The notes under the pieces were generated by a model. That model did no database searches and was not told the origin of the DNA. It worked only from the letters and a program-made list of their open reading frames with translations. This document shows positions 8,920-44,888 of a stretch of DNA of 44,932 bases, piece by piece. The position numbers and the translations under genes are program-made. The stretch is from the NCBI RefSeq assembly GCF_001194135.2, contig NC_068982.1, positions 41,258,510 to 41,303,441 of the forward strand, in the 5' to 3' direction. Source of the DNA: Octopus bimaculoides. Lineage: Eukaryota. Positions within the stretch are counted from its first letter, which is position 1, and each line of letters opens with the position of its first letter.

Positions 8920-9679
8920 GTGGTGAAGCATGACCTTCGAACTTTAAGCCTCACAGAGGCAATGACTAGTGACTGAGACCTTTGGAGATATGGTGTGCTT
9001 GAGAAGACCCGGCAAGCCAAGTGAGTGCATAATCTGTGGCCTCTGCCAGAAGTGTAGACAGCTCACTTATTCGTATCTTTACTTCATTGGACACTAAACT
9101 CTGGTTGCGAAGACCTGTTGAGGCAAGTGAATTGAAATCGAAATCGAACTAAATTCGACGACTGGCACCCGTGCCAACCTCTCCTTCATTGGACACTAAA
9201 CTCTGCTTGCGAAGACCTGTTGGGGCAAGTGAAATCGAAATCATAATTGAACCATATTCGATGACCGGCACCTGTGCCAGTGGAGCACTAACAGCACTGT
9301 CCGAGCATGATCATTGGCAGAGCAGCTTTCTGGCTTCCGTGCTAGTGGCATGTAAATAGCACCATTTGAGCACGGTGCCTTACTGGCACGTTAGAAAATC
9401 ATTCGAGTGAGGTCGTTGCCAGTGCCGCTGGACTGGCTCCTGTGCAGGTGACACGTAAAAAACACCATGTTGAGTGTGGCCGTTGCCAGTACCGCGTGAT
9501 TGGCCCTTATGCCGGTGGCACATAAAAGTGGTTGGCGTTAGGAAGGGCATCCAGCTGTAGAAACTCTGCCAGATCAGATTGGAGCCTGGTGCAGCCATCC
9601 GGTTCACCAGTCTTCAGTCAAATCGTCCAACCCATGCTAGCATGGAAAGCGGACGTTAAAGGATGATGATGATGATGAT
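8920..9679 (+). mobile_element. 5'-truncated RTE LINE 3' end with 3' UTR and (GAT)n tail
   Basis: Translates VVKHDLRTLSLTEAMTSD*DLWRYGVLEKTRQAK*, homologous to the RTE C-terminus at 32284-32630. Ends ccaacccatgctagcatggaaagcggacgttaaaggatgatgat. Has an internal tandem duplication of about 55 bp (about 9085 and 9188). Confidence 0.85.
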
Positions 9680-14378: not shown

Positions 14379-15999
14379 TCATGGTGTGTAAACAACATTA
14401 AAGACATTAAGTGTTGATACAAGACAATTTTACCCATTCACACTCTGGGAAGTGGTTGGCATTAGGAAGGGCATCAAGCTGTAGAAAGCATGCCAAAGCA
14501 AACATTGGAGCTTGGCACAGTCCTCTGGTTAATTGGGTCCTGTCAAACTGTTCAACCCATGCCAACATAGAGAACAGATGTTAAATGATAATGATGATGA
14601 AATCCATTCACCAGGCACTGATTGGCATAGGGCTATTGTAGAAGAACCTTATCCAAGGAGCCATGCAGTAGGACTGAACCTGAAACTATGTGGTCACAAA
14701 GCAAACTTCTTAACCAGATAGTCAGGCTTACACCACACACATGAGAGAGAGTGGGAAGATAGGAGGGAGAGGAGGAAGAGAGGGGAGAGAGGGAGTGACA
14801 ATAAGAAGATAAATTTAATAGCAACTGCAATGTGCTTATGTTACAAAAGGACAACAGTTAAAGTATTGAAAAAAAATGTTTCTCTTTTGTTTTCTATCAC
14901 CATTAATAGGTACCATGGTGTGTTACAATTTATTTCATTTTTATGATAAGTTGTTGTGAGACATTTTACTCAAGCTCACAGAATTCGTTCTTAACACAGC
15001 AGGCTAGTGAAATGCTTAACTGTAGCACAGTGTCCCTAATGCTTATCTTCTCAAAGAACCTATTTATAAATAAGAGGACGAAGTCATTTTGTTTCTTTTG
15101 ATCAGAGCAAAGACTTAGTAACAGAGGACAAATCTGTTGACTTTAAACTGGTAAGTAAACACTATGGCTTTCAATAGATAAATATATATTACAATAACAG
15201 CTGACCAACTAACTTTCCAACACACTTATGACTTATAGCAATTACAGTATGTAATTTCTGTATGACAATAGAATTACAGCTATTGTTGTTCCAACTCAGG
15301 CCAGCTCTGATCCAGCAAACCTTTGATCGAAGGCATTACATCTGTGGCCATTCCATAATTTTCAAAGGAATCTAGAACATTATCCAAAGGTTCCTTTTGT
15401 GGAGTATGATTTGAGGGAGATTTGGCTATTACAAAGCTCCTACATTGGAGACTATAACAGTGTTTAAAAACACTGCATTCATCGTAGCTTTTTCCAATGT
15501 CCACTTTTCCATGCTTACACGTGTCAGATGGTGTTTACAGAGGTAGAGATTCTATGGTCGGATGCTCTTCCTGTCACCAACCATTACCCGTTTCCAAGCA
15601 AGGCGATATTTCCCCGTGGTCAGACATATTTTCACAGGTTACTGAAAAATGAATGACAGCTTGTATGACAGTAACATTCATTAAAACTATCATATGACAT
15701 CAAGACACACACACATACACATATATGATGAATTTCTTTCAGTTTTCTTCTACCAAATACACTCATACGGTATGAGACTATAGCAGAAGACACTTGTTCA
15801 AGGTGTCATGCAGCGGGACTGAACCCATAACCATGTGGTTGGGAAGCAAACTATTTACCACAAAGCCACGCCTGTGCCTGCATCAAAAATAAATCTGATT
15901 TCAAATCAGAAGATATTTGCGTGACCCTGCATGTGTGCATGTACTTATGTGGTATGTAATGTAACACTAAAGACAAAAAAAAAATCAATAATTTAATTA

Positions 16000-24666: not shown

Positions 24667-24900
24667 ATCATCATCATCATCATTATCGTTTAACGTCCGC
24701 TTTCCATGCTAGCATGGGTTGGACGATTTGACTGAGGACTGGCAAGCCAGAAGGCTGCACCAGGCTCCAATCTGATCTGGCAGAGTTTCTACAGCTGGAT
24801 GCCCTTCCAAACGCCAACCACTCCGAGAGAGTAGTGGGTGCTTTTACATGCCACCGGCACGAGGGCCAGTCACACGGTACTGGCAACGGCCATGCTCAAA
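24667..24900 (-). mobile_element. RTE 3' UTR tail fragment with (GAT)n
   Basis: Near-identical to 31917-32100 (catcatcgtttaacgtccgctttccatgctagcatgggttggacg). Confidence 0.85.
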
Positions 24901-30568: not shown

Positions 30569-30666
30569 ATTGTTAGACATCATAATGATAAGGAGAGATT
30601 TGTTATGAGAATTGAAAGCTACATTTAAAATCGTAGCCTGGACTAGAATCAGGATGCTGTGAAGAA
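30569..30666 (-). CDS. TAPT1: TAPT1 coding exon, 98 nt (LHSILILVQATILNVAFNSHNKSLLIIMMSNN)
   Basis: Near-identical to human LHAILIMVQATTLNVAFNSHNKSLLTIMMSNN. Preceded by an AC acceptor; donor AAT|gtaagt. Confidence 0.95.
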
Positions 30667-30738
30667 GTACAGATAGATAAGGAAATATTTGATAGTGAAC
30701 AGAATGTGTGTATTGTTGACACAAGAACAGCACTTTAA

Positions 30739-30957
30739 CCCTTTAGCTTTTAAACCAGCCATATCCAGCCCAAATATTCTGATTGCTTATATTCAAACTG
30801 GCCACATCTGGCCTCTTGCATCTACCCTACAATGTCATTCTAAAAATAAACAGTCATATTATCAAAATCTTGAAGGTATGAGATAAAGCATGATTAATTC
30901 AAAACAATGTGAACAAGTAAGCATTACATTTGATAGAGTAATCTGAATGCTAAAGAG
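30739..30957. mobile_element. piggyBac-like MITE inside the U12 intron
   Basis: TTAA-CCCTTTAGC ... GCTAAAGAG-TTAG: TIRs with one mismatch and a TTAA/TTAG target site. Confidence 0.75.
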
Positions 30958-31544
30958 TTAGGAACTTTTAAAAGTTTTCAGTGATCTCAAATCTGATTTC
31001 AATGTTTAAAATAAAGTAATAAATTCATTTATATTTTCATGTTTCCTAAATATGCTTTGCAGCATGCTTATTTCTATATAGTTTCTCTCTAAATTCCCAT
31101 TCTTTTAAGGCTGTTTTTAACTATTTTCTTGTTTATTTTTTTTCAATATCTATTTGTCTCCAAGAATTTAATCCTAATAGATTTTATTATTTACCTTCCG
31201 GCTATTCATCCACTAATCTTATTTATATAAATATATATTGTAGAACAAAACTACAGAATGTATATAAAATTCATTCATAAAAATCTTAAGACAACTTTTA
31301 TCAATTACTTTTTATTTGTTTCAATCAGTGGACTACGGCCATGCTGGGGCACCACATGAAGGGTTTTAGTCAAACAAACTGATCCCAGTATTTATTCTAT
31401 CAGTCTCTTTTGTTGAATCACTAAGTTATGGCAACATAAACAAACAAATACTGATGTCAAGTGGTGCTAGGGAACAAACACAGACACACACACACACATA
31501 TGTTGACATCATATATTTATGTTATTATTTGTTGCTGTATATGT

Positions 31545-31880
31545 GAAAGCGCATGGCTCAGTGGTTAGAGCGTCTAGCTTACGATCGTGAGGTTAGAGCA
31601 TCGAGCTTATGGACTGGGCTGCGTGTTGTGTTCTTGAGCAAGACACTTTATTTCACGTTGCTCCAGTTCACTCAGCTGTAGAAATGAGTTGCAATGTCAC
31701 AGGTGCCAAGCTGTATCGGCCTTTGCCTTTCCCTTGGATAACACAGGTGGCATGGAGAGGGGAGGCCAGTATGCATGGGCAACTGCTGGTCTTCCATAAA
31801 CAACCTTGCTCAGACTTGTGTCTGGGTGGGTGACTTTCTAGGCACAACCCTATGGTCAGTCATGACCGAAAGGGGTCTCA
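31545..31880 (+). mobile_element. tRNA-derived SINE family C
   Basis: A box tggctcagtggttagagc and central cttgagcaagacactttatttcacgttgctccagttcactcagctg. Related copies at about 2120-2250, 2830-3070, 33478-33640 and 35200-35350. Confidence 0.7.
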
Positions 31881-31916
31881 GCATATGCTTCAAGATCCTT
31901 GTTCCAAAAAAATAAA

Positions 31917-32630
31917 TCATCATCATCATCGTTTAACGTCCGCTTTCCATGCTAGCATGGGTTGGACGATTTGACTGAGGACTGGTGAAACCGGATGGCA
32001 ACACCAGGCTCCAGTCTGATTTGGCAGAGTTTCTACAGCTGGATGCCCTTCCTAACGCCAACCACTCAGAGAGTGTAGTGGGTGCTTTTACGTGTCACCC
32101 GCACGAAANNNNNNNNNNNNNNNNNNNNNNNNNNNNNNNNNNNNNNNNNNNNNNNNNNNNNNNNNNNNNNNNNNNNNNNNNNNNNNNNNNNNNNNNNNNN
32201 NNNNNNNNNNNNNNNNNNNNNNNNNNNNNNNNNNNNNNNNNNNNNNNNNNNNNNNNNNNNNNNNNNNNNNNNNNNNNNNNNNNGTAGTCATCGCCTCGGT
32301 GAGGCCCAATGTACGAAGGTCTTGCCTCACCACCTCAGCCCAGGTCTTCCTGGGCCTACCTCTTCCACGGGTTCCCTCAACTGTTAGGGTGTGGCACTTT
32401 TTCACGCAGCTATCCTCCTCCATTCTCACCACATGTCCATACCAGCGCAATCGTCTCTCTTGCACGCCACAACTGATGCTTCTAATGTTCAGCTTTTCTC
32501 TCAAGATACTTACACTCTGACGGGTATTCACATTGACATTACACATCCAACGGAGCATACTGGCTTCATTCCTTGCGAGCTTACGTATGTCCTCAGCAGT
32601 TACAGCCCATGTTTCACTGCCATGTAGCAT
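31917..32630 (-). mobile_element. 5'-truncated RTE LINE with an open C-terminal frame and (GAT)n tail, spanning a gap
   Basis: MLHGSETW...LRWMC...QERRLRWYGHVVRM...GTRGRGRPRKTW is the canonical RTE C-terminal motif set. The tail is the same as at 9640-9679. Confidence 0.92.
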
Positions 32631-34255
32631 AAATAAATAAATAAAAGAATCACACCCACACAATGGGCTCTCACACAGTTTCTGTCTATGGAATTCACTC
32701 ACAAGGCATTGGTTGACCCAGGGCTATATAGTAGAAGTAACTTGCTCAAGGTGAGCAGTGGGACTAAACCCAAAATCATGTGGTTGTAAAACGAGCTTCT
32801 TAACCACACAGCCATGACTATGTCTTTGTGCCTAAGATTCTCATGAAAAATCCTGAGACAACTTTCATGAAAACTATTTCATATCATTTTATATCATAAG
32901 GTCACTCCCCCGATGAAGAGGAATTGGCCTGCAAGAGTCCTGTGCTGGTGCCATGTTAAAAACACCCAGCACACACTGTAAAGTGGTTGGCATTAAGACG
33001 GGCATTCAGCTGTAGAAGCCAAGCCAAATCAGACTGGATCCTGACACAGTTCTCCGAATTGCCAGCTCTGGTCAAACCATCCAACCCATGCAAGCATGGA
33101 AAACGGACATTAAAGGATGATGGTCATATAATAAAGATGCAGATATTTTAAAAGAACATTTACAAAAGAAGTTTTAAAAAGTGTTTAATGAAATCCTCAT
33201 ATTATGAAAAACTTATCTGGTAAAACAAAATTGGGATAAAACAAATGCTATAAAAATTCATATTGTATCTTTTGCCTCACAAATATTTTGTTGATAAACT
33301 CAAAAGTTAAGTGCTAACACTTTAATTAGACTGACTTGTGAGCAATTCTGGTAGACAGAAACTGTGTAGAAGCCCATAGTGTGTGAGTAAGTATGTATGC
33401 ATATGTACACACACACACTTCATCTTTATATTTGGTTTGAAAGATACTCAAACATATAACACACACACACAAACACTGAAGGTGCATGGCCTAGTGGTTA
33501 AGGTGTTGCACTCACAATTGCAAGATCATGATTTCAATCCCCAAACTGGCAGTGCATTGTCTTCTTGAGTAAAGCACTTCATTTCACACTGTTTCAGTCC
33601 ATTCTGCTGAAAAGGTGTAACCCTGTGATGGAATGTTGGCCTGCCTTCCTATCCAGTAAGATAGCATCATTCAAAAGCTACAACAATGCAAGGAAGTACA
33701 CTGTGACCAGTGGTGTTTAACAACATCCCACAGCCTGGTTGATACAGTGACAGAGAGACACACAGGCAAGCAGACACACATACATACATAAATAAATGTG
33801 TAAAAGACAAAAACTGGGAAGTTTGTTCTAAAATCATTCACTTACAGCATCCTTACATTGTGTTCCAGTGACGATTTTAAGGCTGAATTGTTTAAGACTA
33901 ACCTTATGTAATTTAGTCTTACATTTGTCACTGAAACACATGTAGAGATGATATATGTAATGAGGAAGTGAGTTTAGAGCAAACTTGTTAGTCTAGTTTC
34001 TTTCTATGTATACTCTGTGGGAGAATTAAAAAAACAAAAACTGTGTTTATACGTATCTATAGACTTATACATATATATTTATGTAGGCTTGCATATTTGT
34101 AGAAAATATATGCATGTGTGTATTTTAAATAGCACAAATAGATGTAGTTGAAGTACACAGGTATACTAACAGTTATAAAACAGGTATACTAATCTATTAA
34201 TAATCATGACTCAACACTATGTTCATTAACATAATTCATTTCATCAAAAGGATAT

Positions 34256-34391
34256 TAACATAAAAAATAGCTAAAATAAGGTGACCAAGGACTCCAATAT
34301 GTTCCCTTTTCCTTCCTCTAGGTTCAGTTGCACTCCAGAAGAGAGAGTCAAGGAAATCTTGTCCAATACCAATAAATAATTTATCTGCCAG
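34256..34391 (-). CDS. TAPT1: TAPT1 coding exon, 136 nt (LADKLFIGIGQDFLDSLFWSATEPRGRKREHIGVLGHLILAIFYV)
   Basis: ttattgcag|CTG acceptor. Matches human ADRLFSSFGQDILDALYWTATEPKERKRAHIGV. Ends at a U12-type donor A|ATATCCTTTT. Confidence 0.95.
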
Positions 34392-41612: not shown

Positions 41613-42583
41613 TATACAAATGGTCAAAAGGTTGAACTTCGATAGACTATAGTGGAAGAATGGAGGCGAAGGAAAATAAGATTGAACGAGAGAGGGTTGA
41701 ATGCAAGGACTAATTTCATCATTATAATCATTTAATGTCTGCTTTCCATGCTGGCATGGGTTAGATGGTTTGACTGGAACCGGTAAGTTGATTTGCCAGT
41801 CTGATTTGGCATGGTTTCTAGGGTTGAATGCCCTCCCTAACACCAACCACTCCAAGAGTGTAATGGGTGCATTTTACATATAACCAGTACAGCAGCCATT
41901 AAAGTTCATTCTTCTGATCATTCATATTTATATTTGTAATGAAATAAAAGAATGTATTCAAGAGTATTTAAATAATGGAAATATTTGATAGATAAACTGT
42001 GTTTTCACTTCTGTCTTCCATATATCTCTGCAACACAATTTTTTTTCTAAGTAAATAAATTACATGTTCCTCACATAAACTCCTTTTTAATTCTTTCACT
42101 GCAAAATAAAATTTCATAATTATTTCAGTAATAATGTCAAATATTTACAAAAATGGAAAAAAGAAAGAAAAAAAAAGACCCCTCCCCGCAAAAAACAGAG
42201 TTGAGATTTTCTACAAATCACATGGCCTCAATAAACTTGATATATCTCAATAGAAAATGGTTTCAAACATGACATTCCTCAACAAAAGGTAGGTTGGTAT
42301 ATAAAAACAACTTTCCACAGATAAGAGCAATGACATTTTGAATGGATATATCTGCTGTCTGCAGTAAAAGGGTTAAAACTATGTCAATGTTTTTTTGGGG
42401 TTTTTTTCTAAGACTGTTTTTCTTATTTTACTGGAAAAATATTTCAAAATTCAGAGTTTTTTTCATGGTTTTTGGTATTCTGAGTTTTTGATCTTTCAAG
42501 CTGTCAAGCTTTTGATATTCTAACTTTTCGGTCTTTTAAAATGTAGCCTTTTTGTGTTTGCTCTTATGACTGACTGTCTGCCA

Positions 42584-44278: not shown

Positions 44279-44888
44279 CTGAAATAAAAAAGAGAAACAT
44301 TTATAGTTAAAAGAAAACAAAAGAGAAACTATAATCATGCAGTACTTTTACAGCAAGAAACCTGTTCTGCTCTGGCCATTTTCTCTCATACTTTATCTCA
44401 TGTAGCAAAAAGTATCCCACCACCACCACCACCACCACATGCACCTTGGGACTTATAGTTTTGCAAGCTGCATGGCAGCCTCAATGACGCTGGTGGCATA
44501 TAAAAAGCATCCAGTACATACTGTAATGTGGTTGGCATTAGGAAAGACATCTAGCTGTAGAAATCATGCTAATGCAGATACTGGAACATGGTGCAGTCTA
44601 TGGCCCCATCGGATCCTGTCAAATGATGATGATAATAGTGCTTTGCTGAAGAGGTGTAATAAACCCAAAACATGAGCAATATAATCTCTTGTAGTCACCA
44701 ATATGATTAAAATTTTTTTTTTTAATACACCCAGGCCTATTCCCCATTTTTTAAAAGGAGGAATTAGCCACAACAAGACACACACTAGGAATTCCATTCA
44801 TTTCCCAGCTCAAAGAGGCGAGCTCCATTCTTAATAATTAATGATGTACTAAATAACACGTAATCTGTAATGTATAATCTAATATAAG

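Follow-up and report, generated by a model that had tools for sequence, protein, structure and literature searches.

Sequence signals and orthology point to a U12-type AT-AC intron in TAPT1 of Octopus bimaculoides

Does the TAPT1 gene of Octopus bimaculoides carry an intron of the minor (U12-type) class with AT-AC termini and, if so, what is its history? The question is raised by a 44,932-nucleotide (nt) stretch of contig NC_068982.1 (hereafter the window; all coordinates refer to it, and the features of the gene lie on its minus strand), in which the reading frame of TAPT1, a member of the DUF747 family, is interrupted at 34255-30667 by a segment that begins with AT and ends with AC. Our analysis indicates that this segment is very probably a phase-1 U12-type AT-AC intron, orthologous to the minor intron of TAPT1/POD1 in other organisms. 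The support is of three kinds: splice signals in the sequence, the rejection of alternative junctions, and orthology. That the junction is actually used in the mRNA, and that its use depends on the minor spliceosome, we infer from the DNA. TAPT1 is already known as a minor-intron gene, and the present intron is one more ortholog of a minor intron that is catalogued and deeply conserved.

Upstream of the junction lies a 136-nt exon (exon Eb, 34391-34256), which follows a canonical acceptor (ttattgcag), encodes LADKLF...HLILAIFYV and terminates ...GCT ATT TTT TAT GTT A at 34256, the final A being the first base of a split Ile codon. The first ten bases of the intron (positions +1 to +10; 34255-34246) read ATATCCTTTT, a perfect match at +1 to +8 to the rigid consensus of the U12-type 5′ splice site, /ATATCCTT (here and below a slash marks the splice junction). 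The opposite end comprises, in this order, TTTCCTTATC (30685-30676), tatctgt and the terminal AC (30668-30667); TTTCCTTATCtatctgtAC directly precedes the downstream exon (exon Ec, 30666-30569). This exon of 98 nt opens TT CTT CAC AGC ATC CTG at 30666, thereby supplying the TT of the split Ile codon, continues with LHSILILVQATILNVAFNSHNKSLLIIMMSNN and stops at 30569 before a canonical GTAAGT donor. When 34256 is joined to 30666 the frame is maintained, giving ...GHLILAIFYV-I-LHSILILVQATILNVAFNSHNKSLLIIMMSNN. The descriptive part of an earlier sequence-only reading of this DNA (an exon ending in GTT A, the start of the intron, a branch-like motif followed by AC, and a downstream exon of 98 nt) thus holds in every particular, with all elements on the minus strand. 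In the assembly the intron spans 3,589 nt, of which 3,414 nt are read sequence and 175 are N, the latter number being an estimate.

The partial protein of 611 residues obtained with this junction was compared with the Pfam profile of the family (PF05346/DUF747). The match is single and uninterrupted (E 5.1e-109), extends over profile positions 2-312 of 315 and scores 365 bits against a gathering cut-off of 25. Because the match is unbroken, the AT-AC junction rebuilds the family domain without insertion or deletion.

The strength of the splice signals was assessed with position weight matrices trained on the 5′ splice sites and branch sites of 154 curated minor introns from human and mouse (Olthof 2019, Table S2, PMC6717393), and the scan covered 89,842 window positions on both strands. 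The 12-mer at the 5′ splice site, TTA/ATATCCTTT, scores 13.4 bits, close to the training median of 13.8, and ranks second among all positions. The 8-mer ATATCCTT is unremarkable by itself: it occurs once in the window against 2.0 occurrences expected from shuffled sequence. It is the placement of the motif exactly at the end of an exon that matters. The branch-site element ATTTCCTTATC (30686-30676) contains the core TCCTTATC (30683-30676; consensus TCCTTAAC), with the presumed branch A at 30678; in the form TTTCCTTATC it matches the consensus (TTCCTTRAY) with one mismatch. Its 12-mer, ATTTCCTTATCT, scores 7.3 bits, a value between the 5th and the 25th percentile of curated sites and one equalled or exceeded at 68 of the 89,842 positions. 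From the presumed branch A to the last intron base (C at 30667) is 11 nt, inside the short range of ∼10–15 nt expected of a U12-type intron, and the terminal AC is reached without a long polypyrimidine tract. The distance between branch A and 3′ splice site is reportedly constrained in U12 introns, 11 nt being the optimal spacing. The acceptor is not a polypyrimidine/AG site, unlike those of the seven GT-AG introns of the same gene.

These signals suggest how the intron would be removed. U11 small nuclear RNA (snRNA) would pair with ATATCCTTT, the rigid 5′ splice site, and U12 snRNA with TCCTTATC, leaving the A at 30678 bulged; the AC situated 11 nt downstream would then be selected as the 3′ splice site by its distance, with no polypyrimidine tract involved. 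Splicing would fuse GTT A to TT CTT and so create the Ile codon in ...FYV-I-LHS....

Further evidence is provided by a diverged relative (L001; 88% amino-acid identity), in which the corresponding junction reads TAT GTC A/ATATCCTTTC, with ATATCCTTT retained at the 5′ splice site. The exon of this relative is 77% identical to that of the window at the nucleotide level, falling to 49% at third codon positions, and the intron beyond its first bases is unalignable, with 30% identity at positions 11–60. Positions +1 to +9 are identical in all nine instances. The maintenance of these nine bases while both exon and intron have diverged argues that the 5′ splice-site motif is under purifying selection.

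The intron is shared much more widely. Human and mouse TAPT1 are both catalogued as minor-intron genes (MIDB / Olthof 2019, PMC6717393, Table S2). The human intron (chr4:16186879-16188219; 1,341 nt) begins TCT/GTATCCTTA and has the branch site TTTTCCTTGACC, and the mouse intron (722 nt) begins TCT/GTATCCTTC and has the branch site TTTTCTTTGACT (Olthof 2019, PMC6717393). Knockout of RBM48, a minor-spliceosome factor, leads to retention of the human U12 intron, and the U12 intron of the maize homolog GRMZM2G347645 behaves likewise in the rbm48 mutant (RBM48 preprint). The first of the primers for reverse transcription PCR given in that work encodes CLDAFL, two exons upstream; the second is not recognisably coding. 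All 42 of 42 vertebrates examined possess the TAPT1 U12 intron, and it is deleted in Drosophila CG7218 (twintron paper, PMC3564746). Molluscs have been reported to be relatively rich in minor introns.

To these we can add introns read directly from genomic contigs, every one of which is in phase 1 and stands directly before the conserved [LIV]H residues, that is, at the codon position occupied in the window. A contig identical to mouse (L004) runs from TAT GTC T/GTATCCTTC to TTTTCTTTGACTtgctcttag/TT CTA CAT; both its 12-mers and its length of 722 nt are those of the catalogued mouse intron, which is thereby placed after the YV codons in phase 1. Some 29 further vertebrate-like open reading frames (ORFs), including those of carp, a goodeid fish and bullfrog, show YV/CIL, i.e. 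T/GTATCCT, at the 5′ end, the only end read. In the annelid Paralvinella (L007; 1,086 nt) the 5′ end is GTATCCTTT and TCCTTGAC is followed by 15 nt, the last two of which are AG; in the spider Trichonephila (L010; 668 nt) the 5′ end is again GTATCCTTT, and the stretch after TTCCTTGAC is 11 nt long, its final AG included. The sequence-only reading had left open whether vertebrates, too, have a U12-type intron here. They do, with position and phase unchanged but of the GT-AG subtype, as the mouse contig, the published catalogue (Olthof 2019) and the vertebrate ORFs agree. Two plant contigs complete the picture. An Arabidopsis-like contig (L011; 84 nt) runs from GCC TCA A/ATATCCTTAC to TCCTTAACtgtcttcAC/TT CTC CAT and a second (L012; 117 nt) from A/ATATCCTTC to TTCCTTGACtagtcttAC/TT; both have A/ATATCCTT at the 5′ end and the branch site TCCTTAAC or TTCCTTGAC, then 10–11 nt with AC as the last two bases, then /TT.

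Comparison with the human and mouse introns reveals the same gene family, position after the YV codons, phase, rigid U12 5′ splice site and TCCTTRAC-like branch site near the 3′ end. The subtype differs: the vertebrate intron is GT-AG and splits a Phe codon (T/TY), whereas that of the window is AT-AC and splits an Ile codon (A/TT). The window intron is also ∼3–5 times longer and rich in repeats, and its branch site carries one mismatch. With the land-plant intron of POD1, the TAPT1 homolog, the window intron has in common the AT-AC subtype, the geometry, the phase and the split Ile codon before conserved [LV]HS; the difference lies in length (84 and 117 nt in plants, ∼3.6 kilobases (kb) in the window) and in the perfect branch sites of the plant introns. 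At the same site other sequences show other outcomes. A U2-type intron of 48 nt (GTGAGT...CAG) occupies exactly the same codon position in L009:580-630, and marine-metagenome (TARA) contigs, among them L003:540-600, are intron-less there. A single site is therefore found in four states: AT-AC U12-type (plants and this lineage), GT-AG U12-type (vertebrates, annelid and spider), U2-type (one taxon) and intron-less (others). Subtype switching, conversion from U12 to U2 and loss are the documented fates of U12 introns (Burge et al. 1998; Lin et al. 2010, PMC2831892); all three are sampled here across taxa, and mechanistically none of this is new.

The distribution of the two subtypes bears on history. 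AT-AC termini and the A/TT split codon are common to the window species, its diverged relative and land plants; the GT-AG subtype with its T/TY (Phe) split codon is found in vertebrates, the annelid and the spider. Switching from AT-AC to GT-AG is the favoured direction (Lin 2010, PMC2831892). Most likely, then, AT-AC in the Octopus bimaculoides lineage is a retained ancestral state and GT-AG is derived elsewhere: retention is the simplest account because plants share both AT-AC and A/TT, and because switching is biased in this direction. A reversal from GT-AG to AT-AC in this lineage is the alternative history, and one that we regard as unlikely, albeit with some points in its favor. GT-AG with T at exon position −1 is the state of every other bilaterian whose intron was read at both ends (mouse, a fish-like contig, the annelid and the spider), and the remaining vertebrate-like ORFs show the same T/GTATCCT at the 5′ end; an early switch followed by one reversal amounts to two events, as against at least three independent switches from AT-AC to GT-AG. 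Against it stand the identical A/TT split codon of plants and the known asymmetry of rates. If true, reversal would contradict the common view that switching proceeds only from AT-AC to GT-AG.

Whatever its history, the identification of the intron as U12-type has several observations set against it. The branch core TCCTTATC departs from the consensus at position 7, the usual branch position, where T replaces A, and its score falls in the lower quartile; the same variant is listed for the minor intron of mouse Cfap44 (Olthof 2019, PMC6717393). A pyrimidine-rich CAG located 10 nt into the downstream exon (30659-30657) is a possible competing 3′ splice site, one that would shift the frame. A search of a protein database with the joined peptide of 78 residues returned eight fragments, none of which spans the junction at high identity, and found no transcript-derived protein from the same or a close species. 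An Rfam scan of the ∼45-kb window detected no snRNA genes, the window being too small for this to be informative. Finally, the intron contains an unread gap, in which a local mis-join or a cassette exon lacking conservation may be concealed.

The competing CAG belongs to a broader alternative, namely that the major spliceosome uses nearby GT-AG or GC-AG sites, or that the 98-nt exon is skipped, the AT-AC motifs being coincidental. Besides this CAG, a GT is found 4 nt before the proposed donor (TAT/GTTAAT, 34259), and a primate gene model omits the exon that corresponds to the 98-nt exon. To cover the possible junctions, all GT, GC and AT donors in 34320-34181 were paired with all AG and AC acceptors in 30800-30611, and pairs that were in frame and free of stop codons were kept. 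Several pairs other than 34255/30667 are in frame, but every GT/GC-AG pair among them loses at least eight conserved residues (e.g., ...AIFY/ATILNVAF) or gains unrelated ones, in each case within a transmembrane segment of high conservation. The nearest U2-like pair, GT at 34259 with AG at 30657, costs 14 nt and shifts the frame, and as a U2 donor GTTAAT is in any case poor; if the 98-nt exon were skipped, the result would be a frameshift together with loss of the most conserved transmembrane segment. Only through 34255/30667 is YV-I-LHSILILVQ colinear with intron-less homologs, such as the TARA contigs reading ...TIVYVILHTVLVLLQATTLNVA. The claim, made from the sequence alone, that no other junction restores the frame must therefore be narrowed: others do so, but this one is the sole junction that yields the conserved protein colinearly. 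Given also that the diverged relative keeps the U12 motifs, and that these recur at this position in lineages as distant as plants and vertebrates, we consider the use of GT-AG sites or exon skipping very improbable.

The gap raises a separate concern. It consists of 175 N of estimated length at 32109-32283, lies wholly within the intron (separated by 1,442 nt from its acceptor end and by 1,972 nt from its donor end), and is thus irrelevant to the reading frame. It is conceivable that the scaffold is mis-joined or incomplete at this point, with two introns and an unassembled exon between them, or with two unlinked pieces brought together. The gap is real. It is bordered on one side by the terminal part of a dispersed repeat and on the other by a retroelement-like ORF remnant that is unique in the window, and the window by itself offers no proof that these flanks are continuous. 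On the other hand, the exons on either side are consecutive and co-oriented, in the right order, and not one residue is missing relative to the intron-less homologs and the Pfam profile; furthermore, the U12 5′ splice site on one side of the gap has its counterpart beyond it, in the U12 branch site and terminal AC. That a conserved exon lies within the gap is thus ruled out, and only a lineage-specific cassette exon could sit there. Because the flanking exons are consecutive, co-oriented and complete, the gap leaves uncertain only the length of the intron (∼3.6 kb), and we attach a very small probability to an assembly error that would alter the gene structure.

That an AT-AC intron should here be excised by the major (U2-type) spliceosome, as are rare introns of sodium-channel genes, is barely credible: AT-AC termini by themselves do not specify the spliceosome and U2-type AT-AC introns exist, but these carry G at +5 (Lin 2010, PMC2831892), where the window has the C of a perfect ATATCCTT, and here a U12 branch motif stands 11 nt from the 3′ end and U12 signals are present in all orthologs.

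Recognition of the U12-type AT-AC intron has a practical consequence. A program that admits only GT-AG introns would either break the 98-nt exon or leave it out, and so put this conserved membrane protein out of frame; the junction should therefore be modelled as AT-AC. The model mentioned above, NCBI P0043 (a Saguinus oedipus TAPT1 fragment), reads ...AVLY/FVEIKGS...; it thus lacks the exon downstream of the U12 intron and exemplifies misannotation at this site. The expectation that predictors will mis-model the two exons in the present genome is plausible. U12 introns can be rate-limiting for expression.

At ∼3.6 kb the window intron is the longest of those sampled, which measure 84 and 117 nt in plants, 422–1,341 nt in vertebrates, 668 nt in the spider and 1,086 nt in the annelid. 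Of its read bases, ∼1.1 kb (33%) belong to dispersed repeats that are represented by further copies in the window. U12 signals thus appear to have been maintained through a ∼40-fold growth of the intron by repeat insertion. The sequence-only reading had proposed such growth with U12 identity preserved; the length and the repeat content (about one third) support this. Its assignment of the repeats to RTE elements, short interspersed nuclear elements (SINEs) and miniature inverted-repeat transposable elements (MITEs) is tentative: neither a Pfam search of the retroelement-like frame described below nor an Rfam scan of the window gave a match.

One of these repeats (31916-32106) abuts the gap. 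Its further copies include those at 24673-24862 (91.6% identity) and 9527-9676 (95%), and all of them stop at a point equivalent to ∼32099-32106, almost exactly at the gap edge. The flank on the high-coordinate side (32284-32628) has no second copy in the window. From it an open frame of ∼115 codons (32284-32640, minus strand; ...LHGSETW...LRWYGHVVRM...GRGRPRKTWAEVVRQDLRTLGLTEAMT) runs into the gap. It resembles the C-terminal tail of ORF2 of a retrotransposon lacking long terminal repeats (non-LTR); a Pfam search of the frame gave no significant match. The repeat that abuts the gap has an inverted copy inside the same U12 intron; the two (31919-32104 and 32942-33127) are 77–86% complementary and 0.9–1.1 kb apart, and could give rise to a long double-stranded stem in the pre-mRNA.

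The portion of TAPT1 within the window extends from 44278 to 10310, with one or more N-terminal exons beyond it. Nine exons were delineated by tblastn and manual reading of splice sites: 44278-44154, 38639-38477, 34391-34256, 30666-30569, 28543-28393, 26900-26791, 20827-20768, 16677-16532 and 11156-10310, the last including the stop codon. The seven introns other than that at 34255-30667 are GT-AG, with donors of the GTRAGT type (GTGAGT, GTAAGT, GTAAGC and one GTAACT) and pyrimidine-rich AG acceptors. The last exon (11156-10310) encodes, after DUF747, a low-complexity tail of ∼260 residues rich in Ser, Thr and Pro that does not align to the C-terminus of vertebrate TAPT1.

The highest score of the 5′ splice-site matrix in the window (16.2 bits) belongs to a U12-like motif, GTATCCTTTACC, at 38724-38713 on the minus strand. 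It sits within the preceding GT-AG intron, 85 nt before the acceptor of the exon at 38639-38477, with no U12 branch motif downstream, and is probably a chance occurrence.

Ten N gaps are present in the window as a whole. A repeat family ending in a GAT-type microsatellite is represented by at least eight copies, in both orientations, across the TAPT1 introns; examples are found throughout the window at 9527-9676, 14432-14600, 24673-24862, 41716-41885 and 44503-44593.

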